The notes beneath the pieces are model-generated. The model saw only the letters and a list, made by a program, of their open reading frames with translations. It did no database searches and was not told the origin of the DNA. Position numbers and translations under genes: made by a program. Shown one piece after another: positions 1 to 41,250 of a DNA stretch of 64,000 bases; positions within the stretch are counted from its first letter, which is position 1; each line of letters begins with the position of its first letter. Origin of the DNA: Heteronotia binoei. Taxonomy: Eukaryota. The stretch covers positions 16,864,001-16,928,000 of the forward strand of contig NC_083226.1 of assembly GCF_032191835.1 (NCBI RefSeq), given 5' to 3'.

Positions 1-846
1 TGAGAAGTGAGGAGAGACAGATCAGCCAGCCTTCCGGGGCCACAAACACTTTCCCCCTTGGCCTTGTGGAAGAACCGACCCAGGAGAATCTCCAGGGTTG
101 GGGTTGAGGAAGGTAGCTACGGCTTGGCTTTGCAGGTGGGTCACCAGGGTTGGCTTGATAGGTGGAGGTCAGAATTTGCCCCTGGTCATGCAGGATGTTT
201 GCAGTGGTCGCCTTGGCAGTTCTCTCTTCTGGGCAACCCCTGTGGCTTCCTCCCACCTGGCTTTCTCAGTCACTGTCCTGAATGCCTTCTCAGTTGTGCT
301 CCCTGTGCTGGGTGGTTCAGCCTCGGGGCTGTCCACTTCGCCCTCCCCGTTTCCTCACGTTCACTGCCCACACCCAGCATGGACACAAGTGTTCTGCCTT
401 CCTTGTGTGCTTTAAGGCTTGCCTCTTGTCAGCCAGGTCTGGACTGCTCTTCCCTCCCAGCGGATGCTGTCGTCCCTCCAGGCGTCTCCTCCATGTCATA
501 GTTGAAGAGGGGTGAATCCCAGGCCTTGTATCTCTGGTGCGCTGCCAGTTCTAAGCTTGCTTGAGGCATGGTGGTCACCAAACCCACACAGACCCTTGAT
601 CCCCAGCTTCAGACTCCTGCTCCAGCAAAAGAGTAGCTGCTGGTCTGGAGCCATTCAGGGGCCCTCTGGCTCCCAGATATTTGAGCTTAGGCCATCAGGG
701 GCCACCACATGTCACTTCACATGACTCCAATAGCAGAGTTCTGTCTAGATTGTCCTTCAGGTCCAAGGCAGTGGCTGCCAGTGAGGCTGCGGGGAACAAG
801 ATCGTTCCATTCCGTTTCTCTCCCTCTCTCTGTCCCCCTGTGGCAG

Positions 847-982
847 GGGACGCTGGTGGCCGGCTGCTTCCACGACGTGCTGCTGCTGTATCTCAAGGCC
901 CTGAACGAGACGCTGCAGGAAGGTGGAACCAAGCAGAACACCAGCCGCATCCTGGAGAAGATGAGGGGCCTGAAATTCCAGG
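847..982 (+). CDS. NPR2-like ectodomain gene, copy 1, exon 4 (exons 1-3 lie left of the window)
   Basis: cag|GGG...CAG G|gt, 136 nt; GTLVAGCFHDVLLLYLKALNETLQEGGTKQNTSRILEKMRGLKFQ matches NPR2 exon 4 ([24 protein letters not shown]..KMQG). Confidence 0.93.
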
Positions 983-1631
983 GTATTGGAGGCTTGGCTT
1001 AGGGGAAAGAGTGGCCGGGGGTTGGGGGACGGGGAGGTTGCCAGGAATTTGGGACTGGGGTTGGGGGGAGGCAGGAAGTTGGTGCCCTGGGCTGAGACAG
1101 ATCAGGCCAGGAGGGGGTGGGAATGGCAGAAGGGGGCTGGCTTTAGAGAGGAGCTGCCCCAGAGCCCGTCCAAGAGGTTAACTCAGCCATGGGTCACGAA
1201 TGACAGCGGATGCTGGGATCCTCAAAGAAGAAGAAGAGTTGTTTCATGCCCCACCCTTCACTACCCGGAGGAGCCTTGGAGAGGCTTTCAATCACCTTCC
1301 CTTCCTCTTCACACAACAGGCACCCTGTGAGGTAGGTGGGTGGGGCCGAAACTAGGCAGGGGCCGTGGGGGCATCGCCCTCTCCCAAATCTGCCAGACAC
1401 ACCCACTCCTGATCCCCTGACCCCCCTCTCCTCTTGTTTATGCTGCTTTAATTAAATCAACGCCCCCTGGAGCCCCCTCCAGAAAAAAATCCTAGATATG
1501 CGCCTGTGGCTGAGAGAGCTTTGAGGGAACTATGGCTGGCCCTGGGTCACCCAGCTGGCTTCATGTGGGAGAGGACTAGAGAATCGAACCCGGTTCTCCA
1601 GATTAGAGTCCACTGCTCTTAACCACTACAC

Positions 1632-1767
1632 CAGGGGTAGGGAACGTTGGCTCTCCAGATGTTTTTTTGCCTACAACTTCCATCAGCACCAGCCATTGGC
1701 CATGCTGGCTGGGGCTGATGGGAGTTGTAGGCAAAAAACATCTGGAAAGCCAATGTTCCTACCCCTG
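1632..1767. mobile_element. Palindromic hAT-type MITE inserted in a reverse-strand tRNA-SINE (paralogous copy at about 21953-22089)
   Basis: caggggtag...ctacccctg TIRs; 8-bp TSD cactacac (perfect in copy 2, one mismatch in copy 1). Confidence 0.85.
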
Positions 1768-1810
1768 CAGTACACCAAACTGCCTCTCCCTCCCTGCCCC
1801 CCCCTTCCAG

Positions 1811-1905
1811 GTGTCACTGGGACGGTGAGCCTCAATAGACACAATGACCGAGAGATGGATTTTGACCTGTGGGCCATGAGGGATGTGGAGAGCGGAGAAT
1901 TCCAG
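1811..1905 (+). CDS. NPR2-like copy 1, exon 5
   Basis: ccag|GT...CAG|gt, 95 nt, phase 1 to 0; GVTGTVSLNRHNDREMDFDLWAMRDVESGEFQ vs NPR2 [32 protein letters not shown]. Confidence 0.93.
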
Positions 1906-2161
1906 GTGTGTGTATGGGGGGGGGGAGGTGTCTGCCACAATAGGTGGGGGAGAGTCCCCAAGCAGCCCCACTGGGTCTCTGAATGGGCTGGTATGCCCCA
2001 AAAAGCTACTAGAGAGACCTGAGTGGGAGTAGGGGACCTGAAGGTGGTGGGAGGTGGAACGCCAGGGCCTCCATTGGGAGGGGGTTCTGGGAAGTTGTAA
2101 CAGACATGGAGGAAGGTGCCCCCTGGGTCTGTGGTCTGAATCCAGCCCCTTCTTCCCACAG

Positions 2162-2344
2162 GTGGTGGCTCAATTTGTGGGCACAGAGAATCAGATGAAC
2201 TGGCTGGGGCCCATCCACTGGAAGAAGGGGAGCCCTCCTCTCGACAACCCGCCCTGTGTCTTCGACATGGATGACCCCTCCTGTGGTAAGAGTGGGCGTG
2301 TCCAAGGGTTAGAGGGACTTCATCTCACTGTCCTGCCACAGTAG
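2162..2344 (+). CDS. NPR2-like copy 1, exon 6 (ancestral donor probably at 2291; read-through stop ends 2344)
   Basis: acag|GTG; VVAQFVGTENQMNWLGPIHWKKGSPPLDNPPCVFDMDDPSCGK vs NPR2 [26 protein letters not shown]; read-through adds SGRVQGLEGLHLTVLPQ then TAG. Confidence 0.88.
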   Translation: MVAQFVGTENQMNWLGPIHWKKGSPPLDNPPCVFDMDDPSCGKSGRVQGLEGLHLTVLPQ

Positions 2345-3407
2345 CCGTTCCTAAACCCTTTCATCCCCTCTGCCACCCCCAGTGGTGATAAGTCTGCCAG
2401 GCAGGACAGCTCAGAGTAGGAATGTTCAAACGCCTGCCATTTTGCCTCACGTTCTGCTCTCTGGTTGGGAGCACAGAGCTGGTTCTTCACCAAACGGTTT
2501 GGCGATTCACAAGCTGCCGACATCTTTTTATTGGGTAAGTTTGTGCATATCCATACAGTACGGTTGGCATTATTCCACATCTGTGTGCTCTCACACATCT
2601 GAATGGGAGTTCTGGTTTCCTCCTCTCGTGTAGACCCGCTGTCACTGCTCCTGCATGGCAGCCGATCCTAAAAACAGACAGCAAATTGTTCAGTCTGATA
2701 GTAATGATGGTTTATTTCTTACCATTTGGTGCTCATTTTATTGCTGGTGATCATTGGAGGTTTTCACACATGCACATTTTTGCTCAGCCTTATGGGATTT
2801 TAGTTGTCTCTCCATGTCATTTAATCATCTGAAGGAGCCTCAGTTTCCCCAGCTGCACAGAGGCAAGAGACGCTGGAAAGAGAGAAGGAAATGAAACCGA
2901 AGCCCCACAGCTTGTGCCCTTCTCTCCATCCCCACCGCTGAGTCGCTTTTGGGTGGTTTCTGATAGAGCGCTTAGCCAGTTGGACGCATTTGTCTTCAGA
3001 ACAAGACACTGAGCCAATCCAGATTGGAAAGTGAAGCCTGAGTAATTTACAGTGCTTTGTGATGGGCATTCATGTTGCCATCCCCAGTGTGCCCTTCCAC
3101 CCACACTCTGCAGGCTGAAGTGGGGGTTCCGATCAGAGAGGATGGTCCTCTCCCCCCCCCCCCCAAGTAGGGATGTTCTAACACTTCTCAGTTCATCTCA
3201 TGATCTGCTTCCTGATTGGAGGAGGGAACTGGTGGATTGCCAATCAGTTTGGCCATACCAGAGAATCTCAGGCCTCTGTCCCAGGTAAGTTTTTGCATAT
3301 GCAAACGATATAATGCAGTCAGCAGAATTTTGTACATCCCAGTGGAAGTCCTGCCTACACCCAAGATACTTGTTATCTCTGCTCCCTGCTCAGCAGTGAG
3401 TCATAAA

Positions 3408-3413
3408 AATAAA
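3408..3413 (+). terminator. Candidate poly(A) signal of copy 1 (copy 2 equivalent at 23713-23718)
   Basis: AATAAA about 1.05 kb after the read-through stop in both copies, followed by a GT/T-rich stretch. Confidence 0.4.
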
Positions 3414-5294
3414 CGTTGAGAAAATGAATTGGTTGAACAATGATTATAAATTTTGTAGTGGTTTTAATGTTTGGTCGTGATCTCATTGAGAACTGGAGGG
3501 CATAGTGCACAGAGCTCAAATTGGCACAGGTTGTGTGGTTGTGACCTCTTGTGAAGCCAAGTTGTGTGGGCAACCCCATCGGTGACCCCACAAGCACCAT
3601 CCCAGATCCCCTTGGGGATTCATGTTCCCATCAAGTCTCCTCCTGGGGCCAGCTGTGGGCCTGCCTCAGCAGAAGTGACGCTCTCCTGCCCGGCTCCAGA
3701 TGCGAGACATCCCATTGCCTGGTTCAGCAGGGTCTGCATCGACCCACCCGGAATGGATGCTGCCCCCCCCAGCAGCTTACAGGTGAGGAAGGGGCTTGGG
3801 AAACTCCTCCACACAAACAGAAGCCTTGTGCCTGCACACTGGGGGGGGGATTCACAAGAAGGCTGGTTGGGGTCACTCTGGGAAGGGACTGCCCTCTCTG
3901 GGTGGCTCCTGGGCAGCTGGATGTCCTCAATGGGTCCTCCTTCATTTGGGGATCACTCCTTTTCTAGAGGGACAAGGCTGCATGACCATGACTCTCCCCT
4001 CCCCCTCCAGCCAGGCACTCAGAAGGAGAACTTCAGTGGAGACTCCAGTTCCTGCGACTAGCTCATCGGTGACCTTGTGGAGGTGAAGGATTGTGAGGAA
4101 GGACCAGGGAGAGGTGTGTGTGTGTGTAGAGCTGGTGGGCATTGTGAGGTCAAAGAGGGAGGGGCAGTTGCTAAAGACAGCTGAGAGACCCCCCACTGAA
4201 AGCCCAAGGGGGATTCCTTCTCTCTCTACCACTGATGTTCTCCCTCCAGATCTCAGAAGCTCTTTCATAGCTAGAGGGAGAGGTGAGCCTTGCTGGGCAC
4301 CAGGCCTGTAACCTCTCAGGGGTCTTTTCTCAGCCACCCCTGTGAATTTGACAGAGGTGGGCTTGCTCTCCAGTGGGCTAACACATCTTCCATGCTTTCG
4401 GGGGCTTTCTCAGTGGCCTCTTCCATTCCCTTCACAGCATCATTGGGTACCATGACTGCCTCAAGTCTTCTGACTCTTGGTGAACAGTGGCTGGGCACTC
4501 AAGATCTCCAGTGGTGGGCTGGTCAGTTTCCAGCAGAGCAGGAAAAGTGAGTGAAACCAGGCTTTTTCCATGCACCACCCCACAATGGCAGTACCTTTCC
4601 CATTGGCGAGGCCTTCCTTCCTCCCCATCCCCCCAAAAAGGAGAGCCCCCGTGACATCACTCAGCCTTGCTATTCCTGAGCCCATTTGAAGTGGTCCTCT
4701 GTATGCTGCACTTTTGCAGGATCCCCTTCTGACCTTTCTCTCTTTCTCCATCCCTTGCTTTCTCCTCCCTGCCCCTCCGAAGAAGCTGCCACCTTGCAGA
4801 GGCAAGAAGCGGAAGAGAAGTTTTGGGATCATCTCAAGAGAGACCGACAGCTGTGTGCAGCGGTGCTTTCTCTGTGGAGGGCAGTGACCTCAGCCACAAG
4901 GAGGAAGAAGGAAGAGCTCCATTGGCTTGCAAGAAGCCAAAACCTGCCTTGTTGTAGCTGCATTTTTGAGCCCCCACCTGGTTCCTCTCTTCTCATTCCC
5001 CCCATGCCAGGCATTTCACGACTGAGTGCTGGAAGCAGACCTTTGGCTCTTGTGGCATCTCCAGGAGGGGGTGGAACCTCCAGTGGACAAGGGGCCTCCC
5101 TCTCAGTCACTTGGCTGTGGGCTGCTTTGGGGAACACCTTGTTCCTCACGTCAGGAGGTCTCTCGGCATCGTGTGAACCCGCCCTTGCCAAAGGCACATT
5201 CACCCAGCAGCCCGAAAGCTGCATTTCCAGAGGCAGTGGAGGGGGGCGCATGCCCAGGGGATGTGGATCTCCATGCCTGTGAGGGAAGTCACCT

Positions 5295-5700
5295 CTTCTC
5301 CAGCAATAGAGGACTGGTGGTCGAGATGGTGGAACTTGCAGAGATGGCCAAACTTCCGTCTTTGACAAAAGAGAAGACTTCATTTTATACCTTTATGGAT
5401 TTCTTGTGTGAAGAGCAAAAAAGGTGAACTGATGACTTATGGTTTTGAAGGTTAAAAGGCAAATACGTTTCTGCAGAAAGGTGATAAATTTCCCCTGGTC
5501 TGATACCAGGCAAAAGGTGTAATGAGGAAATGTATGGTTTTTTGTAACTGAGATCATTGGATATTCCTTCCTTCTTTTTAACTGTAGTATCTGAATTGCT
5601 ATTTTCCCTCTTTTTTGCAGGGGTTAAAGTTGTAATGAGGAAATGTATGGTTTTTGGTAACTGAGATCATTGGATATCATTCCTTCTTTTTAATTGCACA
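5295..5700 (+). mobile_element. L1-type LINE 3' end with a roughly 110-bp duplicated tail (paralogue about 25600-26090)
   Basis: LVEMVELAEMAKLPSLTKEKTSFYTFMDFL resembles the squamate L1 ORF2 C-terminus. Confidence 0.65.
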
Positions 5701-8400: not shown

Positions 8401-9624
8401 GGAAAAGATCTCTCAACTCCTCAATCTTTCCAACCTATTTCTTTAATAAAATAAATCTTTCTATCTATTATGACAGATAGGTTAAATTTAATTATCGCTA
8501 TATAGATATCCAAGAAGATTTATTAAGAGATGTCATATAGCTGATGGTGTAAGGAGATTGTTAAATATTATTGAACATGCCCAGAAATTTGAAATTGCCT
8601 CATCTGAAATTGCGTCATTGATCCTATCTGTTGTTGCAGCAAAGGCCTTTGATAGATTGGAATGAACTTTGATAGATTGGAATGAGTGGATCCTAAAATA
8701 TCTCTTGACAGCAGTGGAGTTTGGAGAAAGTTCTGTAGAATTATAGATTCATTATATTCTGATTCAAAAGCTTTTGTGTATGTTAATAGGTACACATTGG
8801 CATAATTTGATTGGACAAGATTTGCATTATCACTTGAATCTATATCTAATGTAATCAGGCAGCATAAAGATATTAAAAGAGTTTGGATTGGACAACAACA
8901 ACACAAAATAGGATTATATACAGATGACATAATTTTGTTTGTTATCAATGCAGAACAAACTACCTGCAGGTATACAGGAATTCACTCTGTCCTGGTTTTA
9001 AGATAAATGTCGATAAAACTGAAGTTCTTAAAATGCATCTGTCATAAGGACCAATAGAGCACATAGAACACCATTTTGCATTCAAGTGGGTAACTGAAGA
9101 ATAGAAATATTTAGGAGTGCAGATTACAACTTAGTTATCACAACTGTTTAGGTATAATTATGACTCATTGCTGAAGCATATTAATAAAGAACTCAAAGTG
9201 GTCTAGGCGAAACCTCTCCTAGCTTAGGAAAGCAGCTGCAATTGAATGGATGGTGACACCCCGCTTTTAATATTTGTTTCAAACTCTCCCCATAATGATT
9301 TCAGATCAGTTTTTGCAGAACAGGCAGAGAAAATGCTTAGATTTCATTTGGAATAATAAAAGGCCTCAAGTCCAAGCTTAGGGTGGCCAGACCGTCCCGG
9401 TCTCCCGGGACATTCCCGGTTCTGGCCAACCAATCCCGGCTCCCGGGCTGCCTATACCGGGACCATTAAAGGTCCCGGTTTAGGCAGCCCCGGAGCCGGT
9501 GGGCCGCGGGCGCCGGCGGGGACAGGGGCGAGTGAGGGAGCGTCCCTGCGCACGCGCAGGGACGCTCCCTCACTCGCCGCCTTCCCCGCCCGCGCGCGGG
9601 GCCCGGCGGCAGTGGTGGAGGCCT

Positions 9625-10770
9625 CACCGTGGCCTCCGCTGGTCGCTGGAAGCCCTCCAGAGACTCTGGAGGGCCTCCAGTGACCAGCGGAGGCCGCGGA
9701 GAGGCCGCGGGGCACCCGGCGCTGGTCCCGGAAGGCCTTCCAGAGCCTCTGAAAGGCCTTCGGGGACCAGCGCCGGCCAGCGAAGGCTTCCCCGCGGCCT
9801 CCGCTGGTCCCTGGAGGCCCTCCAGAGTCTCTGGAGGGCCTCCAGGGACCAGCGGAGGCCGCGGGGAGGCCGCGGGGCACCCGGCGCTGGTCCCGGAAGG
9901 CCTTCCAGAGCCTCTGGAAGGCCTTCGGGGACCAGCGCCGGCCAGCGAAGGCTTCCCCGCGGCCTCCGCTGGTCCCTGGAGGCCCTCCAGAGTCTCTGGA
10001 GTGCCTCCAGGGACCAGCGGAGGCCGCGGGGAGGCCGCGGGGCACCCGGCGCTGGTCCCGGAAGGCCTTCCAGAGCCTCTGGAAGGCCTTCGGGGACCAG
10101 CGCCGGCCAGCGAAGGCTTCCCCGCGGCCTCCGCTGGTCCCTGGAGGCCCTCCAGAGTCTCTGGAGGGCCTCCAGGGACCAGCGGAGGCCGCGGGGAGGC
10201 CGCGGGGCACCCGGCGCTGGTCCTGGAAGGCCTTCCAGAGCCTCTGGAAGGCCTTCCGGGACCAGCGCCGGCCAGCGAAGGCTTCCCCGCGGCCTCCGCT
10301 GGTCCCTGGAGGCCCTCCAGAGTCTCTGGAGGGCCTCCAGGGACCAGCGGAGGCCGCGGGGCACCCGGCGCTGGTCCCGGAAGGCCTTCCAGAGCCTCTG
10401 GAAGGCCTTCCGGGACCAGCGCCGGCCAGCGAAGGCTTCCCCGCGGCCTCCGCTGGTCCCTGGAGGCCTTCCAGAGTCTCTGGAGGGCCTCCAGGGACCA
10501 GCGGAGGCCGCAGGGAGGCCGCGGGGCACCCGGCGCTGGTCCTGGAAGGCCTTCCGGGACCAGCGCCGGCCAGCGAAGGCTTCCCCGCGGCCTCCGCTGG
10601 TCCCTGGAGGCCCTCCAGAGTCTCTGGAGGGCCTCCAGGGACCAGCGGAGGCCGCGGGGAAGCCGCAGAGCAGCCGGCGCTCGTCCCTGGAGGCCTCCAG
10701 AGGCCAGCGCCGGTAGCGGAGAGGCCCGGCGCTGGTCCCTGGAGGCCTCCAGAGGCCAGCGCCGGCAGCT
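9625..10770. repeat. GC-rich 165-bp minisatellite built from two palindromes, about 6.5 units
   Basis: gcgaaggcttcccc recurs at 9780, 9945, 10110 and 10275, then at 10429 and 10573. Confidence 0.95.
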
Positions 10771-10877: not shown

Positions 10878-11264
10878 NNNNNNNNNNNNNNNNNNNNNNN
10901 NNNNNNNNNNNNNNNNNNNNNNNNNNNNNNNNNNNNNNNNNNNNNNNNNNNNNNNNNNNNNNNNNNNNNNNNNNNNNNNNNNNNNNNNNNNNNNNNNNNN
11001 NNNNNNNNNNNNNNNNNNNNNNNNNNNNNNNNNNNNNNNNNNNNNNNNNNNNNNNNNNNNNNNNNNNNNNNNNNNNNNNNNNNNNNNNNNNNNNNNNNNN
11101 NNNNNNNNNNNNNNNNNNNNNNNNNNNNNNNNNNNNNNNNNNNNNNNNNNNNNNNNNNNNNNNNNNNNNNNNNNNNNNNNNNNNNNNNNNNNNNNNNNNN
11201 NNNNNNNNNNNNNNNNNNNNNNNNNNNNNNNNNNNNNNNNNNNNNNNNNNNNNNNNNNNNNNNN
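10878..11264. other. Assembly gap (387 N)
   Basis: Run of N. Confidence 1.
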
Positions 11265-11926
11265 CACAGAGTGTTGGACTGGATGGACCACTGGCCTGAT
11301 CCAACAGGGCTTCTCTTATGTTCTTATGTGACGCAGAGTGTTGGACTGGATGGGCCACTGGCCTGATCCAACAGGGCTTCTCTTATGTTGTTATGTGACG
11401 CAGAGTGTTGGACTGGATGGGCCACTGGCCTGATCCAACAGGGCTTCTCTTATGTTGTTATGTGAGGCAGAGTGTTGGACTGGATGGGCCACTGGCCTGA
11501 TCCAACAGGGCTTCTCTTATGTTGTTATGTGACGCAGAGTGTTGGACTGGATGGGCCACTGGCCTGATCCAACAGGGCTTCTCTTATGTTGTTATGTGAC
11601 GCAGAGTGTTGGACTGGATGGGCCACTGGCCTGATCCAACAGGGCTTCTCTTATGTTCTTATGTGACGCAGAGTGTTGGACTGGATGGGCCACTGGCCTG
11701 ATCCAACAGGGCTTCTCTTATGTTCTTATGTGACGCAGAGTGTTGGACTGGATGGGCCACTGGCCTGATCCAACAGGGCTTCTCTTATGTTCTTATGTGA
11801 CGCAGAGTGTTGGACTGGATGGGCCACTGGCCTGATCCAACAGGGCTTCTCTTATGTTCTTATGTGACGCAGAGTGTTGGACAGGATGGGCCACTGGCCT
11901 GATCCAACAGGGCTTCTCTTATGTGA
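11265..11926 (+). repeat. 67-bp tandem array (at least 10 copies) of the CR1 LINE 3' terminus
   Basis: Unit gcagagtgttggactggatgggccactggcctgatccaacagggcttctcttatgttnttatgtgac matches the CR1 ends at about 35065-35123 and 47565-47625. Confidence 0.92.
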
Positions 11927-13456: not shown

Positions 13457-14914
13457 ACATTGGGCTGACGTTGGGCTAGAGGGCGCGTGCAAGAAGAGGC
13501 CGTTCTGGCCCTCAAGTGGGGCGGTGGGGGTAGGGGTGGTGGAGGGCTCCATTGCAGACAGGGCAGGGTAGGGTAGACTGGCGCACACAAGTGAAGGTCC
13601 CGGCTGCAGTCCGGGGCTGGGGATCAGTGGAGAGGTGATGTTCACCTGACAGGAAGAAATCGGAATTGGAGGTCTTGTAGCCCCAGAAGTCAGTTGTGAC
13701 TTGGTGGCGCCTTTCACCGCCCCCCCCTTGTTCCGCTGGGCTTGTCTAGCTGGATCATGCTACAGGTAAGGGCAGGAGACCGTGCGGCACATATCTAAAC
13801 CTCTGAGTGGATCCCCACCAGAGCTGCTTTGAGGAGGGGTGGAAAGGAATCACCTTAGGGCAGCTGTGGGAGCGGGGAGGCTGTATGGCAGCGAGCTGTC
13901 AGCTTTCCTCCTCAGCGGTGGTAGGAGAGAAGGCCATGGAGGTTGGGGCCACTATGTGCCCCCTGAAAGCCATCAGGGCCCCCCAATTCTTCAAATCTTG
14001 GCTACGGGACTGGGTTCAGGGTCAGTGGCTACGGCTTTCTGTTTTCTAGGAGGACGGCCGACTCTGGGCAGGGTCCTCCCCAGAAGCCTGTAGAACAGAA
14101 AGAGGGGGGGGGAGGCAGTGGAATGGTTACAAATTGTACTTTTACACCTGGGAGATCTTGCACATTTTGTGTGGATCCCTTTAGCGTGGCTGCAGCTTCC
14201 TGTGCTCTAGGAGGATGGCCACTCTCCACAGCATTTCCCAAGAAGCCTGGGGAACAGGAAGGGGGGGGGGGGTTAAGGGCTTCAAAGGGTACTTTCCAGC
14301 GTCTTCACCGAGGACAAAGAGGGGGGCTCCGGTGGGACAACCTGAAGCTCATATGAGAGAATATTTTGCATTAAGGGTTGCCTCCCTAGGAACTCCGCTG
14401 CCTCTTCACAACACAGGCACGCTGGGCATGGCTTTGTGCCACTAGCACCTGCCTGGCATCCTCGTGCCGGTGCAGCCGGAGAGAAGCAGCAGCCGGCAGA
14501 GGGCAGGCCCCTCCACTCCCTCATCACTTCTCTTGGAAGGACTGAGCTGCAGGGGCATCTCCTGTGTGGAGACTCAAATCGACCTTTCCCACCTTCACAT
14601 CTGGGGCAGGGGGATTGTTCTGAATCTTTTTTTCCAGGCTAATTGTACTGACGAGCAGGCTCCGAGTATCAGGAACCAGAAGAATGCCTGGATGGAGCCG
14701 TCCAGTCCAAAGGTCCAGATTCCAGAAAGGCAGACCAGGCAGCTTCAGTGGTTGACCAAGGAAGGCGGGGAATGTTGAGGAAGCAGCGATGGCTGGGCTA
14801 ATAAATAGGGGCGCCAGCGCTGGTTTTGGGAAATACTGGGAAACTGGTGGATGGAAACTGGGCAGGGTGGGCTTTGGCCACGGAGGAACCTCAGCACGGT
14901 ATAATGCCATAGAG

Positions 14915-15959: not shown

Positions 15960-17100
15960 TCACCGCCAGGCGCGGAGCTGCCAATGATGGAGGTGTGGGG
16001 CTGTTGCTTTGGGGGCAATCGGGGGCTCAGGAGGGCCCACCGGCAATCCCTGGCAGCCCACCGGGAGAAGCGGGCAGCATTCAGCTCTAGTTCCCGCCTG
16101 GTTCCTCCCACCTGCGGCCAGGAGAGGTGTGCGCGGGAGGGCGCAGAGGGGCGGCCCCCCCGACTTCCCCCCGCCCCCGAGGAGGCCTCTGGAGGGAGGG
16201 AGGGCCGTGCAGGGGCGCCTTTTCCGAGGGAGCGCAGCGCGGCCGCCCCACAGACGGGCTCTCCCTGCCTTCTGCTGCCGCCCAGAGCTCCTCGCCCGCC
16301 CCGTCCATGGCGCCACCGCCCCTCCTGCTGCTGCTGCTGCCGCCAGCCCTGCTGGGGGTGCCCTCCGCCGCCTCCTCCGCCCAGGCCAGCGCCGCCCCGT
16401 CGGGGGACCTGACTTTGGGGGTGCTGCTGCCGGGGCGCAACGTGAGCTACCCCTGGGCCTGGCACCGCATCAAACCCGCCCTGAGCCTGGCGCTGGAGGC
16501 CCAGCTGCGCCCCCCAGGCCTCGCCCTCCGCACCGCCTTCGCCTCCACCGAGGGCCGGGATGGCGACTGCAACCGCTATGTGGCCCTGTGGGAGGCCGCG
16601 AAGCTGAAGTGCTTCCACGACCCGGACGTGCTGCTGGGGCCGGGCTGCGGCCACCCAGGCTACTCAGTGGGGCGCTTAGCCCAGCACTGGCAGCTGCCGC
16701 TCCTTCGAGCCGGGGCCTATGCAAGAAGACGCGCAGATCTCGGCAGCGCGGTGGTGTACGCCGGTCCCCTGGGGCCTGCCCTATTCGCCTTCGTGCCCCG
16801 GCTGCACCGGCGCTTCAACTGGACCTCCCGCGCCGTCCTTGTGTACGCTGAGAAGCTCCATGACTGGCAATACCATTACGCCTTCTTCAAGCGACTTGAA
16901 GAGGCCGTCTGGATCGCCGACTTCCACCGATATGGGCAGCCCGAGGAGACGGTCCGGTTCATCCGGGCCAAGGGGCGAGGTAAGCCAGCCCCCCCCGCCC
17001 CGCCCGCCCATCCGGAGCCGCCTCTCCCGCCCTGGGAGCGGCCCCTGCCCCCACCCCTCTGGGGCACCGATCCAGGGCTTTCTTTCTGCGGGGAAACGCG
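15960..17100 (+). promoter_or_regulatory. CpG island / promoter of NPR2-like copy 2
   Basis: Very high GC and CpG density around ATG 16307 (Kozak ccgtccATGG); GC boxes upstream. Confidence 0.75.
16307..16979 (+). CDS. NPR2-like copy 2, exon 1 (signal peptide plus ANF-receptor ligand-binding domain)
   Basis: MAPPPLLLLLLPPALLG signal peptide; LTLGVLLP, YPWAWHRIKPALSLALE, HDPDVLLGPGC, HWQLPLL, FNWTSRA and FIRAKGR match NPR2/NPR1 exon 1; donor G|gtaagc, 673 nt. Confidence 0.95.
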
Positions 17101-17167
17101 GCTGAACGGAGTTCCTGGACCTCTTGGGGGAAACAAGATTATTATTTTTTTAAATGTCCAAATGTCG

Positions 17168-17425
17168 GGACCAGTTTGGTGCAGTGGTTGAGCCTGCCCA
17201 CTCTTATCTGGGAGAACCGGGTTTGATCCCCACTCCTCCACTGGCACCTGCTGGAATGGCCTTGGGTCAGCCATAGCTCTCATAGGAGTTGTCCCTGAAA
17301 GGGCAGCTGCTGTGAGAGCCCTCTCAGCCCCACCCACCTCACAGGGTGTCTGTTGTGGAGGGGGGGGGGGAGATTGTGGCTGCTCTGAGATTGAGAGAAA
17401 AGGGCAGGATATAAATCCAATCTCA
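17168..17425 (+). mobile_element. tRNA-derived SINE with L2-like tail (Squam3-type); further copies at 38755-38965(-), 48088-48365, 49820-50085(-), 55730-56000 and 57868-58155
   Basis: cagtttggtgtagtggtt A-box, gggtttgattcccc B-box, tail cccacctcacagggtgtctgttgtgggg...gatataaat. Confidence 0.85.
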
Positions 17426-19836
17426 TCTTCATTTCCCTCTGGAGACTTCTGGCCCCTCTTTTTCGGAGGGGGGACCCTGACAGCCCCTCTCCCAATCTTC
17501 AAGAGAGGAGGGAAGGCCGTGGGTGAGGAAGGCATGTTGTGGAGGGCGAGAAGGCAGTGGGCCTAGAGATGCACATCGAACAGAAGGGGGCAGTCAGTGT
17601 CTTCTGGGAAGGGAGCCCCTCCCCCAGGCCTCCCTCCAGCCTCAGCTCCCTCCTCCCACACTTAAGAAAAAGCTGGTGTACTTCTTGCAGTGGCTGTAGG
17701 ACATAATTTTCACTCACAAATCCACAGAGGTTCGTTGCCTCTGAATGTATTCCAGTATTTTCTCTGTTATTTTCCCAATTTTTTTTAGACCTGGAAAACA
17801 GGTATTTTGTGAGTTTGCGGCAACTGTGGTGTGGACTTGCCCAGTGCTCTGGAGGCTTCTTGCCTCAAGCTGATTCTTGGCTTCATGAGGTTTTTCTCGC
17901 TCACCTCATGGTAGCTCACTGGGGGTTTTTCGTAGAAATAATTATAGGGAAACATTAAAAAAAAAACAATTGCAGTGGCCTTAGGGAACAATTCAAGCCC
18001 CTCTCCCTTTTAGGGAACAACTTGATTTTATTTACTTTACTGATTCCACCTCTTTACCCCCAGTGAGGACCTCCAGCATCTGACCTGTTTCTTCCGTCAC
18101 CCATGTTATGTCTCACAACAGCCCTGTGAGGGAGGCTAGGCTGAGAGTGTGGGACTGGGCCAAGGTCTCTCAACGAGCTTCTGTGGTGTGGGGGGAGCGG
18201 GTTTGAACCTTGGATTCCCAGAACCTTCTCTAGGAATACAACCTTTTTATTAAAGGCGGAGCTTGGTAGAATGCGTACACAAATTCTAAAGCTATGGAAG
18301 GATCCATATTTTTAATGAATTTTGTACCACTGAAGCACCATGAAATATGTGGTTTTTGTGATGAAGTTCATTGACAAGAGTGTGATATGTGTTCAGAATT
18401 TGGACTGGGATGGAGTCCAAGTGAAATAAGAACACCAAAAGGGCACCCACTTTTTTATACCATGGCAGCGCTATGAAATGCTGGATCCATGATTTTGATG
18501 GTTTTGTTCGCGGCAAGCTGTGATACAACCGATGTACTCTGTTGTTTCAGTAGCCCTGTACATCTCTGTGGTATAAATGTGTGTCCAGCCCATTGTACAG
18601 GCATACATCCATCTCTAAGGAAGATTTGGGGAACTAGTACTGGATAAACCTAGAGTTTGTACCACACGTTCAGCTATGGATCCGATAAGTGTAACACAAG
18701 ACTTACTCAGCACACTTACAAAGAACAATCAGGTACACTCTGCATTAGGATTGTAAGTGTGTCCGGGGTGACTTGTGAGCAGGACTTGAGTAAAAATAGT
18801 ATGAATTCATGAAGATCCGTCCCCTGAATCCATGTTTTTTCACCATGATGCTGACCACAGAACTGGATACGTGTTTTCCTTTGTGCAGTTTGTGGACATC
18901 AGTGGATTCTGTACACTTTTTGTGTGTGTTGTGGGGTCTGATGTAAAAATCATGAAGAAACGTCAAGATTTCTACCTTGACTCCATTTTTTTGGCTCGAT
19001 GGTGGTGTCAGGAAGTGTTGGATCTTTATTATCTCATGTTCCGTCTATAGACTTTGAGATATAGACCTTTGCAGTGAATTTCAGTAGAGTCAGGGGCCCC
19101 ACCATGCCCCCCCTCCGCAGCACCCTCACAGTCCCACCACCCACACCCTTCTGCCCCCCCACCGAGGGCGTGTGCCACATAGGGGGGTGGGGAGGGTGTG
19201 CGCGGCAGCCATGCGACGGCCAGGCAACGTTCTGAGCCCACAGAGGCTGCACGCCATCCAGCTACTGTCGCTCCGCGGAGGCAGAGGTGGAGGGACAGCG
19301 ATCGGACAGTGTGTGGGCCTCTGCAGTGCTCAGAGTCTTGCTGGGGCCCGTGGAGGTTGGAAGGGTGCATGCGACTGGACAGAGAGGGTGCCACAGAGGA
19401 GGTTGGCAGGGTAACGGATGGCGAGTGGCTCTCCTCCCGGGTGATATCAATCACCGGGGGGGCAATTGGGTCCCCCCGCACCCCAGGCATGTGCCTAATT
19501 TGCCTACAGGTGGGTCACCACCGAGTGCAGCCCACGTAAAAGTGATGAGAATCCATCCACCATGGCGCCATGAATTGCTCGGTCCATGAGCTTTAAAGTG
19601 CAGTCTGGGAAAATGTCCTCCTTGATTGACGCGGGTGAGGAGGACACCTGGCTGCCAGCACTGGGGAGGGGGGACTGCAACACAATGCTCATGTGACAAG
19701 GAGCCAACGAGCCAGATAATGCAGAGCATCCTAAGTCAAACCTTGCGCTTCATGCTCATTGCCCCTCACTGCCTGCCCTCTGCTCCTTGCTTGCGTCTGA
19801 CACACACTCCTCTGGGTGGGGGTGGTTTCTCCTTAG

Positions 19837-20039
19837 TGGTCTACATCTTGGGGCCCCATAAGATGTTGCAGGAGATCATGCACCAGGCACAGGCTCAGAA
19901 CATGACCAGCGGTGACTACGTCTTCATCTACCTGGACATTTGGGGGGGAAGCCTGAGAGCTGAGGGGCATCGTGAGGCCAAGAAGCCCTGGCAGAGCATG
20001 GAGAGCCAAGATACAGGAGTCCTCCGAGAGGCCTTCCAG
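19837..20039 (+). CDS. NPR2-like copy 2, exon 2
   Basis: ttag|TG...CAG|gtaaga, phase 1 to 0; VVYILGPHKMLQEIMHQAQAQNMTSGDYVFIYLD...LREAFQ. Confidence 0.95.
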
Positions 20040-20142
20040 GTAAGACCAGGACTCTGCTGCAGGGAGGGAAGGAAGGAAAGGGAGACTTGGGAGCAGAGTT
20101 CCAACCAGCTGGAGCTCCCTTGACCTTTTCCTCTAATTGCAG

Positions 20143-20256
20143 ACGGTGCTGGTGGTCGCTGCTCATGAGCCCCAAACCCCTGAATACCGGCGTTTCCAGA
20201 GCCAGCTGGTCCAGCGTGCCCAGAGGGACTTTGGTGTGGCTGTGAATGACTCCGTG
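20143..20256 (+). CDS. NPR2-like copy 2, exon 3
   Basis: gcag|ACG...GTG|gtaaat, 114 nt; TVLVVAAHEPQTPEYRRFQSQLVQRAQRDFGV. Confidence 0.95.
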
Positions 20257-21174
20257 GTAAATCTACACACCCCTGCTTGCATGCCTTCTTCTGCACTCTT
20301 ATTATGGGAGGGAGTGAAGAGCCCTTTATGAGAAGTGAGGAGAGACAGATCAGCCAGCCTTCCGGGGCCACAAACACTTTCCCCCTTGGCCTTGTGGAAG
20401 AAACGACCCAGGAGAATCCCCAGGGTTGGGGTTGAGGAAGGCAGCTACGGCTTGGCTTTGCAGGTGGGTCACCAGGGTTGGCTTGATAGGTGGAGGTCAG
20501 AATTTGCCCCTGGTCATGCAGGATGTTTGCAGTGGTCGCCTTGGCAGTTCTCTCTTCTGGGCAACCCCTGTGGCTTCCTCCCACCTGGCTTTCTCAGTCA
20601 CTGTCCTGAGTGCCTTCTCAGTTGTGCTCCCTGTGCTGGGTGGTTCAGTCTCGGGGCTGTCCACTTCGCCCTCCCCGTTTCCTCACATTCACTGCCCACA
20701 CCCAGCATGGACACAAGTGTTCTGCCTTCCTTGTGTGCTTTAAGGCTTGCCTCTTGTCAGCCAGGTCTGGACTGCTCTTCCCTCCCAGCGGATGCTGTCG
20801 TCCCTCCAGGCGTCTCCTCCATGTCATAGTTGAAGAGGGGTGAATCCCAGGCCTTGTATCTCTGGTGGGCTGCCAGTTCTAAGCTTGCTTGAGGCATGGT
20901 GGTCACCAAACCCACACAGACCCTTGATTCCCAGCTTCAGACCCCTGCCCCAGCTAAAGAGTAGCTGCTGGTCTGGAGCCATTCAGGGGCCCTCTGGCTC
21001 CCAGATATTTGAGCTTAGACCATCAGGGGCCACCACATGTCACTTCACATGACTCCAATAGCAGAGTTCTGTCTAGATTGTCCTTCAGGTCCAAGGCAGT
21101 GGCTGCCAGTGAGGCTGCGGGGAACAAGATCGTTCCATTCCGTTTCTCTCCCTCTCTCTCTCCCCCTGTGGCAG

Positions 21175-21310
21175 GGGACGCTGGTGGCCGGCTGCTTCCA
21201 CGACGTGCTGCTGCTGTATCTCAAGGCCCTGAACGAGACGCTGCAGGAAGGTGGAACCAAGCGGAACACCAGCCACATCCTGGAGAAGATGAGGGGACTG
21301 AAATTCCAGG
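21175..21310 (+). CDS. NPR2-like copy 2, exon 4
   Basis: 136 nt, phase 0 to 1; GTLVAGCFHDVLLLYLKALNETLQEGGTKRNTSHILEKMRGLKFQ. Confidence 0.95.
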
Positions 21311-22132
21311 GTATTGGAGGCTTGCCATGGGGGAAAGAGTGGCTGGGGGTTGGGGGACGGGGAGGTTGCCAGGAATTTGGGACTGGGGGTTGGGGGGAGG
21401 CAGCAAGTGGGTGCCCTGGGCTGAGACAGATCAGGCCAGGAGGGGGTGGGAATGGCAGAAGGGGGCTGGCTTTAGAGAGGAGCTGCCCCAGAGCCCGTCC
21501 AAGAGGTTAACTCAGCCATGGGTCACGAATGACAATGGATGCTGGGATCCTCAAAGAAGAAGAGTTTTTTCATGCCCCGCCCTTCACTACCCGGAGGAGC
21601 CTCGAAGGGGCTTCCAATCACCTTCCCTTCCTCTTCACACAACAGGCACTCTGTGAAGTAGGTGGGCGGGGCTGAAACTAGGCAGGGGCCGTGGGGGCAG
21701 CGCCCTCTCCCAAATCTGCCAGACACGCCCACTCCTGATCCCCTGACCCCCCTCTCGTTTATGCTCCTTTAATTAAATTAGCACCCCCTGGAGCCCCCTC
21801 CAGAAAAAAAATCCTAGATACGGGCCTGTGGCTGAGAGAACTCTGAGGGAACTATGGCTGGCCCTGGGTCACCCAGCTGGCTTCATGTGGGAGAGGACTA
21901 GAGAATCGAACCCGGTTCTCCAGATTAGAGTCCACTGGTCTTAACCACTACACCAGGGGTAGGGAACGTTGGCTCTCCAGATGTTTTTTTGCCTACAACT
22001 TTCATCAGCACCAGCCATTGGCCATGCTGGCTGGGGCTGATGGGAGTTGTAGGCGAAAAACATCTGGAAAGCCAATGTTCCTACCCCTGCACTACACCAA
22101 ACTGCCTCTCCCTCCCTGCCCCCCCCTTCCAG

Positions 22133-22227
22133 GTGTCACTGGGACAGTGAGCCTCAATGGAGACAATGAACGAGAGATGGATTTTGACCTGTGGGCCATG
22201 AGGGATGTGGAGAGCGGAGAATTCCAG
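22133..22227 (+). CDS. NPR2-like copy 2, exon 5
   Basis: 95 nt, phase 1 to 0; GVTGTVSLNGDNEREMDFDLWAMRDVESGEFQ. Confidence 0.95.
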
Positions 22228-22482
22228 GTGTGTGTATGGTGGGGGGAGGTGTCTGCCACAATAGGTGGGGGAGAGTCCCCAAGCAGCCCCACTGGGTCTC
22301 TGAATGGGCTGGTATGCCCCAAAAAGCTACTAGAGAGACCTGAGTGGGAGTAGGGGACCTGAAGGTGGAGGGAGGTGGGACGCCAGGGCCTCCATTGGGA
22401 GGGGGTTCTGGGAAGTTGTAACAGACATGGAGGAAGGTGCCCCCTGGGTCTGTGGTCTGAATCCAGCCCCTTCTTCCCACAG

Positions 22483-22665
22483 GTGGTGGCTCATTTTGTG
22501 GGCTCAGAGAACCAGACGAACTGGCTGGGGCCCATCCACTGGAAGAAGGGGAGCCCTCCTCTCAACGACCCGCCCTGTGTCTTCGACATGGATGACCCCT
22601 CCTGTGGTAAGAGTGGGTGTGTCCAAGGGTTAGAGGGACTTCATCTCACTGTCCTGCCACGGTAG
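22483..22665 (+). CDS. NPR2-like copy 2, exon 6 (ancestral donor probably at 22612; read-through stop ends 22665, giving a 467-aa precursor)
   Basis: VVAHFVGSENQTNWLGPIHWKKGSPPLNDPPCVFDMDDPSCGK, then SGCVQGLEGLHLTVLPR and TAG. Confidence 0.88.
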   Translation: MVAHFVGSENQTNWLGPIHWKKGSPPLNDPPCVFDMDDPSCGKSGCVQGLEGLHLTVLPR

Positions 22666-25600
22666 CCGTTCCTAAACCCTTTAATCCCCTCTGCCACCCC
22701 AGTGGTGATAAGTCTGCCAGGCTGGACAGCTCAGAATAGGAATGTTCAAACGCCTGCCATTTTGCCTCACGTTCTGCTCTCTGGTTGGGAGCACAGAGTG
22801 AGTCTTCACCAAACGGTTTGGCGATTCACAAGCCGCTGACATCTTTTTATTGGGTAAGTTTGTGCATATCCATACAGTACGGTTGGCATTATTCCACATC
22901 TGTGTGTTCTCACACATCTGAATGGGAGTTCTGGTTTCCTCCTCTCGCGTAGACCCGCCGTCACTGCTCGCTGCATGGCAGCCGATCCTAAAAACAGACA
23001 GAGAGCAAATTGTTCAGCCTGATAGTAATGATGGTTTATTTCTTACCATTTGGTGCTCATTTTATTGCTGGTGATCATTGGAGGTTTTCACACATGCACG
23101 TTTTTGCTCAGCCTTATGGGATTTTAGTTGTCTCTCCATGTCATTTAATCACCTGGATGAGCCTCACTTTCCCCTGCTGCACAGAGGCAAAAGATGCTGG
23201 AAAGAGAGAAGGAAATGAAACCGAAGCCCCACAGCTTGTGCCCTTCTCTCCATCCCCACCGCTGAGTCGCTTTTGGGTGGTTTCTGATAGAGTGCTTAGC
23301 CAGTTGGACGCATTTGTCTTCAGAACAAGACACTGAGCCAATCCAGAGTAATTTACAGTGCTTTGTGATGGGCAGTCATGATGCCATCCCCAGTGTACCC
23401 TTCCATCCACACTCTGCAGCCTGAAGTGGGGGTTCCGATCAGAGAGGATGGTCCTCTCCCCCCCACCCCAAGTAGGGATGTTCTAACACTTCTCAGTTCA
23501 TCTCATGATCTGCTTGCTGATTGGAGGAGGGAACTGGTGGATTGCCAATCAGTTTGGCCATACCAGAGAATCTCAGGCCTCTGTCCCAGGTAAGTTTTTG
23601 CATATGCAAACGATATAATGCAGTCTGCAGAATTTTGCACATCCCAGTGGGAGTCCTGCCTCCACCCAAGATACTTGTTATCTCTGCTTCCTGCTCAGCA
23701 GCCAGCCATAAAAATAAACATTGAGAAAATTAATTGGTTGAACAATGATTATAAATTATTGTAGTGGTTTTGATGTTTGGTCGTGATCTCATTGAGAACT
23801 GGAGGGCATAGTGCACAGAGCTCAAACTGGCACAGGTTGTGTGGTTGTGACCTCTTGTGAAGCCGAGTGGTGTGGGCAACTCCATCGGTGACCCCAGGAG
23901 CACCATCCCAGATCCCCTTGGGGATTCATGTTCCCATCAAGTCTCCTCTCGGGGCCAGCCGTGGGCCTGCCTCAGCAGAAGTGACGCTCTCCTGCCCGGC
24001 TCCAGATGCGAGACATCCCGTGGCCTGGTTCAGCAGGGTCTGCATCGACCCACCCGGAATGGATGCTGCCCCTCCAGCAGCTTACAGGTGAGGAAGGGGC
24101 TTGGGAAACTCTTCCACACAAACAGAAGCCTTGTGCCTGCACACTGGGGGGGTGGGATTCACAAGGGGGCTGATTGGGGTCAGTATGGAAAGGGACTACC
24201 CTCTCTGGGTGGATCCTGGGCGGCTTGATGTCCTCAATGGGTCCTCCGTTATTTGTGGATCACTCCTTTTCTAGAGGGACAAGGCTGCATGACCATGACT
24301 CTCCCCTCCCCCTCCAGCCAGGCACTCAGAAGGAGAACTTCAGTGGAGACTCCAGTTCCTGCAACTAGCTCATCGGTGACCTTGTGGAGGTGAAGGATTG
24401 TGAGGAAGGACCAGGGAGAGGTGTGTGTGTGTGTAGAGCTGGTGGGCATTGTGAGGTCAAAGAGGGAGGGGCAGTTGCTAAAGACACCTGAGAGACCCCC
24501 CACTGAAAGCCCAAGGGGGATTCCTTCTCTCTCTACCACTGATGTTGTCCCTCCAGAGCTCATAAGCTCTTTCACAGCTAGAGGGAGAGGTCAGCCTTGG
24601 TGGGCACCAGGCCTGTAACCTCTCAGGGGTCTTTTTTCAGCCAACCCTGTGAATTTGACAGAGGTGGGCTTGCTCTCCAGTGGGCTAGCACATCTCCTTT
24701 CATGCTCTCAGGGGTTTTCTCAACGGCATCATCATCTTCCATTCCGTTCACGGCATCATTGGGCACCATGACAGCCTCAAGTCTTCTGACTCTTGGTGAA
24801 CAGTGGCTGGGCACTCAAGATCTCCAGTGGTGGGCTAGTCAGTTTCCAGCAGAGCAGGAAAAGTGAGTGAAACCAGGCTTTTTCCACACACCACCCCACA
24901 ATGGCAGTACCTTTCCCAATGGCAAGGCCTTCCTTCCACCCCATCCCCAGAAAAAGGAGAGCCCCCGTGACAGCACTCAGCCTTGCTATTCCTGAGCCCA
25001 TTTGAAGTGGTCCTCTGTTTGCTGCACTTTTGCAGGATCCCCTTCTGACCTTTCTCTCTTTCTCCATCCCTTGCTTTCTCCTCCTTGCCTCTCCGAAGAA
25101 GCTGCCACCTTACAGAGGCAAGAAGCGGAAGAGTAGTTTTGGGATCATCTCAAGAGTGACAGACAGCTGTGTGCAGCTCAGCCGCAAGGAGGAGGAAGGA
25201 AGAGCTCCATTGGCTTGCAAGAAGCCAAAACCTGCCTTGTTGTAGCTGCATTTTTGAGTCCCCACCTGGTTCCTCTCTTCTCATTCCCCCATGCCAGGCA
25301 TTTCACGACTGAGTGGTGGAAGCAGACCTTTGGCTCTTGTGGCATCTCCAGGAGGGGGTGTGGAACCTCCAGTGGACAAGGGGCCTCCCTCTCAGTCACT
25401 TGGCTGTGGGCTGCTTTGGGGAGCACCTTGTTCCTCACATCAGGAGGTTTCTCGGTATCGTGTGAACCTGCCCTTGCCAAAGGCCCCTTCACCCAGCAGC
25501 CCGAAAGCTGCATTTCCAGAGGCAGTGGAGGAGGGCGCATGCCCAGGGGATATGGATCTCCATGCCTGTGAGGGGAAGTCACCTCTTCTCCAGCAATAGA

Positions 25601-26099
25601 GGACTGGTGGTCAAGATGATGGAACTTACAGAGATAGCCAAACCTACGTCTTTGACGAAAGAGAAGACTTAATTTTATACCTTTATGGATTTCTTGTGTG
25701 AAGAGCAAAAAAGATGAACTGATGACTTATGGTTTTGAAGGTTAAAAGGCAAATACATTTCTGCAGAAAGGTGATAAATGTCCCTTGGTCTGATACCAGG
25801 CAAAAGGTGTAATGAGGAAATGTATGGTTTTTGGTAACTGAGATCATCGGATAGCATTCCTTCTTTTCAACTATAGTATCTGAATTACAATTTTCCCTCT
25901 TTTTTGCAGGGGTTAAAGTTGTAATGAGGAAATGTATGGTTTTTGGTAACTGAGATAATCGGATTCCTTCTTTTTAATTGTGGTATCTGAATTACAATTT
26001 CCCCTCTTTTTTGCAGGGGTTAATCTGTTTACTTTTGTTTCTTTGTTCTTCCTCCCTTATTATCTGTATTTAAAACTCTCATGAAATGTTTTTAAAAAA

Positions 26100-39814: not shown

Positions 39815-40327
39815 CATGTTTGCAGAACTTGGCCTGGATGAAGCACAAGCTTCATTGATTGGAGGGAAAAACATCAACAACCTCAGATATGCAGGTGATG
39901 ATACTCTAATGGCAGAAAGTGAGGAGGACCTAAAGAACCTCTTGTCGAGGGTGAAAGAGGAGAGCACAAAAGTAGGCTTGAAACTCAACATCAAAAAAAC
40001 TAAGTTCATGGCATCCGGCCCCATCACTCCTTGGCAAATAGAAGGGGAAGACATGGAAGTCGTGACAGACTTAAATTTCTGGGATCCAAGATCACTGCAC
40101 ATGGTGACTGTAGCCATGAAATTAAAAGACGCTTGCTCCTTGGGAGGACAGCTATGGCAAACCTAGGCAGTATAATAAAAAGTAGAGACATCACCGTGCC
40201 AACGAAAGTCCATATAGTCAAAGCCATGGTATTCCCAGTAGTAAGGTATGGCTTTGAGAGTTGGACCATAAGGAAGACTGAGTGCAGAAAAATAGATGCT
40301 TTTGAGCTGTGGTGCTGGAGAAGACTC
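39815..40327 (+). mobile_element. RTE-BovB LINE RT fragment
   Basis: NINNLRYAGDDTLMAESEEDLKNLLSRVKEESTKVGLKLNIKKTK; FELWCWRRL. Confidence 0.92.
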
Positions 40328-41250
40328 AGAGACAGGTCCTCTTGTGGATCAAAAACTGGCTGATTAACAGGAAGCAGAGAGTGAGCATAAATGGGCAGTC
40401 TTTGCAGTGGAGGACGGTAAGCAGTGGGGTGTTGCAGGGCTCAGTCCTGGGTTCCATGCTCTTTAACTTGTTCATAAATGATTTGGAGTTGGGAGTAAGC
40501 AGTGAAGTGGCCAAGTTTGCAGATGACACTAAATTGTTCAGGGTGGTGAGAACCAGAGAGGATTGTGAGGCACTCCAAAGGGAACTGTTGAGGCTGGGTG
40601 AGTGGGCGTCAATGTGGCAGATGAGGTTCAATGTGGCCAAGTGCAAAGTAATGCACATTGGGGCCAAGAATCCCAGCTACAAATACAAGTTGATGGGGTG
40701 TGAACTGGCAGAGACTGACCAAGAGAGAGATCTTAGGGTCGTGGTAGATAACTCATTGAAAATGTCAAGACAGTGTGCGATTGCAATAAAAAAGGCCAAC
40801 GCCATGCTGGGAATTATTAGGAAGGGAATTGATAACAAATCAGCCAGTATCATAATGCCCCTGTATAAATCGATGGTGCGGTCTCATTTAGAGTACTGTG
40901 TGCAGTTCTGGTCACCACACCTCAAAAAGGATATTATAGCATTGGAGAAAGTCCAGAAAAGGGCAACTAGAATGATTAAAGGGTTGGAACACTTTCCCTA
41001 TGAAGAAAGGTTGAAACGCTTGGGGCTCTTTAGCTTGGAGTAACGTTGACTGTGGGGTGACATGATAGAGGTTTACAAGATAATGCATGGGATGGAAAAA
41101 GTAGAGAAATAAGTACTTTTCTCCCTTTCTCACAATACAAGAACTCGTGGGCATTCAATGAAATTGCTGAGCAGACAGGTTAAAACGGATAAAAGGAAGT
41201 ACTTCTTCACCCAAAGGGTGATTAACATGTGGAATTCACTGCCACAGGAG
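40328..41250 (+). mobile_element. 5'-truncated CR1 LINE ORF2 (RT to 3' region) abutting the BovB fragment
   Basis: QVLLWIKNWL...VLQGSVLG..LFNLFINDL...KFADDTKLF...HLEYCVQFWSPH. Confidence 0.95.

Follow-up and report, generated by a model that had tools for sequence, protein, structure and literature searches.

The gene analysed here, predicted to encode a secreted and anchor-less natriuretic peptide receptor ectodomain in Bynoe's gecko (Heteronotia binoei), carries a cysteine at the position of the dimer-interface residue Trp74 of NPR-A, a natriuretic peptide receptor. The gene lies on the plus strand of a 64,000-nucleotide stretch of vertebrate DNA (the window) from CM063328.1 of assembly GCA_032191835.1 and is named "atrial natriuretic peptide receptor 2-like" by NCBI (protein model P0163). 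Cysteine occurs at this same column in three lineages of the gecko family to which the gene belongs. The best single reading of the pattern is an interchain disulfide at the two-fold contact of a receptor dimer, a tentative reading to which we give a little under an even chance. A first-pass annotation of the window had proposed such a covalent homodimer from the letters alone. Its exact alignment to Trp74, the missing anchor and the intact signal peptide stood, but conservation of the cysteine, which it had offered as a check, did not, and the further unpaired cysteine that it noted is a trait of the whole family.

The cysteine at the Trp74 position

Each of the six exons of the ectodomain was read directly, together with its splice sites, and the NCBI model was used for whole-protein work. 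Exon 1 (16307 to 16979; all features of the gene are on the plus strand) is a single open reading frame from an ATG at 16307 to a GT donor at 16980, and its translation matches residues 3-201 of P0163 at 100% identity. In a phmmer search of all PDB chains, exon 1 matches NPR-A chains at E values of 3e-30 to 5e-29 and NPR-C far more weakly (E = 3e-12). The ANF_receptor domain (PF01094) is precomputed for all proteins of the family; exon 1 alone scores 23.6 bits (E = 3e-5), just below the Pfam cutoff of 25.4 bits.

The motif KLKCFHDP, first read at 16604-16625, is present but starts 3 nt earlier, encoded at 16601 to 16624, and is the counterpart of DLKWEHNP in human NPR-A and DLKLYHDP in NPR-B. 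Its cysteine, residue 102 of the precursor, is encoded by TGC at 16610 to 16612. Counting along rat NPR-A (1dp4) places it exactly at Trp74, and it is referred to below as Cys74. The alignment, to 1dp4 and 9bcl, has no gap between the equivalents of Cys60 (16568 to 16570) and its partner Cys86 (16646 to 16648). Both of these cysteines are invariant across 37-38 members of the family, and almost every member has the same 27-residue span from one to the other, with position 74 inside it. The role given to Trp74 as a membrane-distal dimer contact is borne out by the direct W74-W74' contact across the GC-A dimer (PMC13230927), and the head-to-head dimer formed through the membrane-distal lobe is regarded as the physiological one (PMC4049422).

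The predicted fold agrees with the alignment. An AlphaFold2 monomer model of P0163:3-429 has a mean predicted local distance difference test score (pLDDT) of 82.7 and a predicted template-modelling score of 0.86. In Foldseek comparisons it superposes on 1dp4, 1t34 and 9dzh with template-modelling scores of 0.87-0.90 and root-mean-square deviations of 2.3-3.0 Å over about 427 columns, giving the bilobed fold of the periplasmic-binding-protein type I class. The cysteine is model residue 77, inside a predicted helix of residues 65-79 (encoded at 16574 to 16618; pLDDT about 95 there) that is the counterpart of the W74 interface helix of NPR-A. A distal-lobe cysteine pair and a juxtamembrane pair appear at the expected positions of the sequence.

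Recurrence at column 74 and the partner of the thiol

A protein search (query P0001) finds about 40 ectodomain-only relatives, all of them from geckos: at least 13, arrayed in tandem, in H. binoei, at least 12 in Gekko kuhli, and others in G. japonicus, Paroedura picta and Sphaerodactylus townsendi. The matches that follow are NPR2 proteins of full length, from other squamates, birds, mammals and frogs. In a maximum-likelihood tree the family is a single clade, sister to squamate NPR2 (support 99), with species-specific expansions; in H. binoei seven close copies lie inside 0.4 Mb. A literature search found no paper on a gecko NPR2-like family, which is present in databases only as automatic 'NPR2-like' annotation.

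Within this family Cys74 is not a conserved residue. It is absent in Paroedura, Sphaerodactylus and most Gekko members, and the column is hypervariable. Among the 417 columns of the ectodomain it ranks sixth in variability; 12 residues occur in it (C, S, G, I, A, L, Y, N, H, R, D and K), and the tree has 18 changes there. NPR2 itself has Leu. Cysteine is nonetheless found in 7 of 37 members, in three lineages set apart by branches of at least 95% support. The first comprises five of the six closest H. binoei copies, among which the codon is TGC in the five and AGC (Ser) in P0162, with GGC (Gly) in the outgroup copy. The second is P0170 of H. binoei, sister to a Leu-bearing copy (support 95), and the third is P0172 of G. 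kuhli. Changes that involve cysteine number at least 4 of the 18 at column 74 vs 15 of 2281 at the other non-canonical columns (binomial 5e-6). A more conservative figure, conditioned on the gain that first drew attention and counting two further gains among 16 changes, is about 0.005.

Such a column could acquire a cysteine that has no structural role, as one more substitution at a fast-evolving surface site, with the thiol left free or capped by cysteine or glutathione after secretion. This explanation, possible though less probable than the interchain bond, draws on the variability of the column just described and on a ratio of non-synonymous to synonymous substitution (dN/dS) above 1 in exon 1. 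The codons at the column are of the NNC type, so that TGC is a single step from GGC, AGC and presumably TAC or CGC, and a single stray cysteine at about 14 other columns indicates some tolerance of free thiols in the family. What a merely fast column does not predict is that cysteine involvement at position 74 should be about 30 times the family background while none of the other 24 most variable columns has a single change involving cysteine, or that the six-copy clade should keep cysteine in 5 of 6 copies beside freely varying neighbours at positions 71 and 75. A surface position on a two-fold axis differs from most other sites in that a new cysteine automatically finds a partner, its own copy on the other chain. 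The recurrence at column 74 hence fits a symmetric interchain disulfide, and does not prove one. Column 74 is not the only recurrent site of extra cysteines; one other, and no more, lies at the GHRE position of exon 2 (Arg 19971-19973 in the window), where five members, three of Paroedura and two of G. kuhli, have Cys.

The remaining cysteines bear on whether Cys74 could be paired within its own chain. In NPR-B the disulfides are Cys53-Cys79, Cys205-Cys314 and Cys417-Cys426 (PMC12394403). In the window gene, as first noted, the YIC cysteine of exon 2 is lost (VVYILG, with Leu at 19848-50 in the Cys205 position) and the AGCF cysteine of exon 4 is kept (AGCFHD, Cys at 21193-95, the Cys314 equivalent). 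The latter is indeed orphaned here, but nothing specific to this gene attaches to it, as it is kept in 35 of 38 members and its partner is lost in 31 of 38 regardless of Cys74.

A bond within the chain from Cys102 to this orphaned cysteine would give a fully paired set of six, and the count invites the idea, since the window gene and four close paralogues with Cys74 have all lost Cys205 and have exactly six ectodomain cysteines. The arrangement is nevertheless very improbable. Both P0170 and P0172 have Cys74 together with an intact Cys205/Cys314 pair; the whole P0170 protein has seven cysteines, three canonical pairs and Cys74, and Cys74 there is therefore without an intramolecular partner. 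Most members that lack Cys74 retain the orphaned Cys314 equivalent, which thus needs no partner. In the NPR-A and NPR-C structures, furthermore, the Cys314 site belongs to the membrane-proximal lobe, and tens of Å separate it from the interface helix of the distal lobe. The established partner of Cys314 in NPR-B, moreover, is Cys205 (PMC12394403).

The gene, its product and its surroundings

The product is predicted to be a secreted ectodomain. The signal peptide occupies about 16307-16387, and the remainder of exon 1 encodes most of the membrane-distal lobe. Exons 2 (19837 to 20039), 3 (20143 to 20256), 4 (21175 to 21310), 5 (22133 to 22227) and 6 (22483 to 22616) follow, with their splice sites read; exon 6 holds the juxtamembrane cysteine pair (22576-78 and 22603-05). 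The ectodomain has six cysteines in all, and the protein has seven N-glycosylation sequons. All six exons are open in 7 of 7 close copies, in which the Kozak ATG and signal peptide are also almost invariant.

The absence of a transmembrane segment, part of the original proposal, holds for every annotated form. A hydropathy scan in which two NPR2 controls were positive found no hydrophobic membrane-like segment in any family model except the signal peptides. Likewise, tblastn with full-length NPR proteins found no transmembrane, kinase-homology or cyclase exon in the 64 kb, bar two decayed fragments of the NPR2 kinase-homology domain, one behind the window gene (24719-24790) and one behind the upstream copy (4847-4903). 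Decayed pieces of this kind behind both copies indicate that the family arose by duplication of the whole NPR2 gene at the DNA level, with the signalling half lost afterwards. P0163 has two extra 3' coding exons within 23863 to 24799 (about 23863-24087 and 24712-24799), located by tblastn with P0163 and with NPR2 from gecko and skink. Both are without a membrane-spanning segment, and the second is itself a piece of the decayed kinase-homology domain, the fragment 24719-24790 having been exonised as the last coding exon of the model.

If the exon-6 donor is unused, reading continues through an extra cysteine (22618-20) to a stop at 22663-65, and ends of this type are annotated for P0162 and P0165. 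The tail reads SGCVQG...*, with its cysteine three residues beyond the juxtamembrane pair, a place that roughly matches the interchain cysteines of NPR-C. A link between the tail cysteine and Cys74 was considered and rejected, as paralogue tails have C or R whatever the residue at 74.

The six closest copies form 15 pairs, and in every pair exon 1 has a dN/dS of 1.2-2.3 by exon-by-exon comparison (Nei-Gojobori); these copies therefore are not pseudogenes. In exon 1, the differences between the window gene and its neighbour comprise 55 that are non-synonymous and 9 that are synonymous (binomial p = 0.02). For exons 2-6 the ratio is 0.6-1.4 among close copies and 0.3 vs the outgroup copy P0167. 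The two parts have similar synonymous rates (dS); identity is 94-95% in the flanking non-coding DNA and 89% in the exon-1 region. By these comparisons the distal lobe encoded by exon 1 is under diversifying selection, not decay. A pseudogene origin of the pattern was rejected on the intact exons of the seven copies, the conserved signal peptide and the contrast in exon-1 dN/dS at similar dS; gene conversion as the cause of that contrast was rejected on the similar dS of both parts and the 94-95% identity of the flanks on both sides. The most variable exon-1 site among the six closest copies lies two residues past the Cys60 equivalent and corresponds to Asp62 of NPR-A, a ligand contact.

Elsewhere in the window, the upstream tandem copy, P0164, occupies positions 1 to 5696 on the plus strand with its 3' part, from exon 4 to exon 6 and the tail; this stretch is 95% identical to 20329-25980. 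Exon 1 of that copy lies off the window (L001:21004-21585), and there too position 74 is Cys. An assembly gap of N (10878-11264) lies between the two gene copies, flanked by tandem-repeat arrays at 9619-10754 and 11267-11924 whose repeat steps are about 165 bp and 67 bp. Introns 1 and 4 of the window gene contain repeats resembling short interspersed elements (17050-17449 and 21850-22249), which in the RNA runs show very high depth and many back-joints and strand-switch joints, and are the source of the short open reading frame motif repeated in the window. A 244-aa open reading frame at 40309-41043 resembles a fragment of a long interspersed element reverse transcriptase. No other gene-like reading frame was seen from 26 to 64 kb of the window, and the 38 kb downstream hold no additional member of the family.

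A disulfide-linked dimer and its relation to known receptors

Several observations weigh against a disulfide-locked dimer made from the window gene. Position 74 has another residue in 30 of 37 members, including Ser in the close paralogue P0162, and since most members lack Cys74, function cannot depend on covalent linkage at this site. Hypervariability extends to interface positions 71 and 75 on either side, and the old dimer contact may have been remodelled or lost. With an even number of cysteines (6) in the window gene, parity forces no interchain bond. The annotated model P0163 starts not at the ATG of exon 1 but with a short coding exon (MLQ, 13757 to 13765) joined to an acceptor inside exon 1 (AG 16383-84), so that the signal peptide is bypassed. 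Finally, in two metatranscriptome contig sets and two raw RNA-seq runs, with about 6% of each raw run read, no read of at least 97% identity fell on exon 1 of the window copy (region 16250-22249).

The last two points raise the alternative that the window copy is silent, or made only without a signal peptide, in which case its cysteine would be without consequence and the pattern at column 74 would reflect expressed paralogues. Depth on exon 1 is zero in all four RNA sets, and P0163, from its start at 13757, enters exon 1 behind the signal peptide. Set against this, the copy retains an intact reading frame and signal peptide, with its splice sites and Kozak ATG in place, the zero depth comes from only a small part of each raw run and from unspecified tissue, and the excess of non-synonymous change in exon 1 is hard to obtain in a silent copy. 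On balance this alternative is unlikely, more so than a free thiol.

The transcript data and models have further features. RNA contigs that touch the window gene run on into paralogue sequence, and most of the RNA depth, in all four runs, falls on the repeats of introns 1 and 4. Models P0162, P0164 and P0165 also skip the signal peptide, which makes 4 of the 7 close copies. In these four models unrelated 5' exons take the place of the signal peptide and are spliced just ahead of the ASAAPSG sequence in exon 1; those added to P0164 resemble the annotated 3' tail exons of P0167, a likeness that would suit transcripts reading through the tandem array. The models that skip the signal peptide probably reflect such read-through between tandem copies.

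The TGC at 16610-12 places a cysteine on the helix responsible for the two-fold, membrane-distal contact of natriuretic peptide receptor dimers. Under the preferred reading, an interchain disulfide, the product would be a secreted, glycosylated and anchor-less NPR2-derived ectodomain, and Cys74 would pair in the endoplasmic reticulum with the same cysteine of a second chain, either the same protein or another paralogue with Cys74. The resulting disulfide-linked dimer would keep the 2:1 receptor:peptide architecture without a membrane. This presumes continued head-to-head dimer formation in the family, an approach of the two cysteines to within bonding distance, binding of a natriuretic-type peptide and expression of the window copy.

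Known receptors offer partial parallels. With NPR-B/NPR2 the gecko family shares its intron positions, the equivalents of Cys53-Cys79 and Cys417-Cys426 and the cysteine of AGCF, and its exons 2-6 keep NPR2-like motifs. Unlike NPR2, it has lost Cys205, has dN/dS above 1 in exon 1, and is without a transmembrane helix, kinase-homology domain or cyclase domain, of which only decayed fragments are left; NPR2, for its part, has Leu at 74. The window gene thus lacks the three domains that mark a membrane guanylyl cyclase receptor. As a natriuretic peptide ectodomain without a cyclase, the gecko protein also resembles the clearance receptor NPR-C/NPR3, a cyclase-less ligand sink. NPR-C is a disulfide-linked homodimer, but its interchain bond is juxtamembrane and not at the distal interface. 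It is also, unlike the gecko family, the product of a separate and ancient gene with a membrane anchor. In sequence, NPR-A/B is a much closer match for gecko exon 1 (E = 1e-30) than NPR-C is (E = 3e-12), and the family groups with NPR2 and has no anchor, in contrast to the single anchor and short tail of an NPR3 orthologue.

A further parallel is an engineered one. NPR-A with the mutation W74C, in work by De Lean, McNicoll and Labrecque from 2003, reportedly forms spontaneous disulfide dimers. By alignment the gecko cysteine occupies exactly the same position on the same helix; unlike the mutant, it is natural and sits in an NPR2-derived soluble protein with altered neighbouring residues. If the interchain disulfide is real, evolution would have replayed a mutant reportedly made to decide between candidate NPR-A dimers and so identify the physiological one. 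The repeated gain of cysteine at one hypervariable column is independent evolutionary evidence that in the native dimer the residue at this column faces its counterpart on the other chain. Soluble receptor ectodomains are usually poor binders of natriuretic peptides because binding needs two chains, a weakness that would be overcome by a natural disulfide joining them at the two-fold contact.

A more speculative extension, improbable as a whole, is that the secreted gecko NPR2 ectodomains are circulating peptide traps, in which members with Cys74 form disulfide-locked homo- or heterodimers, directed at fast-changing peptides. Exon 1, which in NPR-A supplies ligand-contact and interface residues, is diversifying under selection, and the targets could therefore be peptides that themselves change fast, such as venom natriuretic peptides of snake predators or species-specific signalling peptides, rather than the gecko's own CNP. 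Mixing of the Cys74 paralogues, six in H. binoei, would then yield combinatorial binding sites. The wider gecko family is a more surprising object than the cysteine itself, and its members may be candidates for ready-made scaffolds for natriuretic peptide traps.
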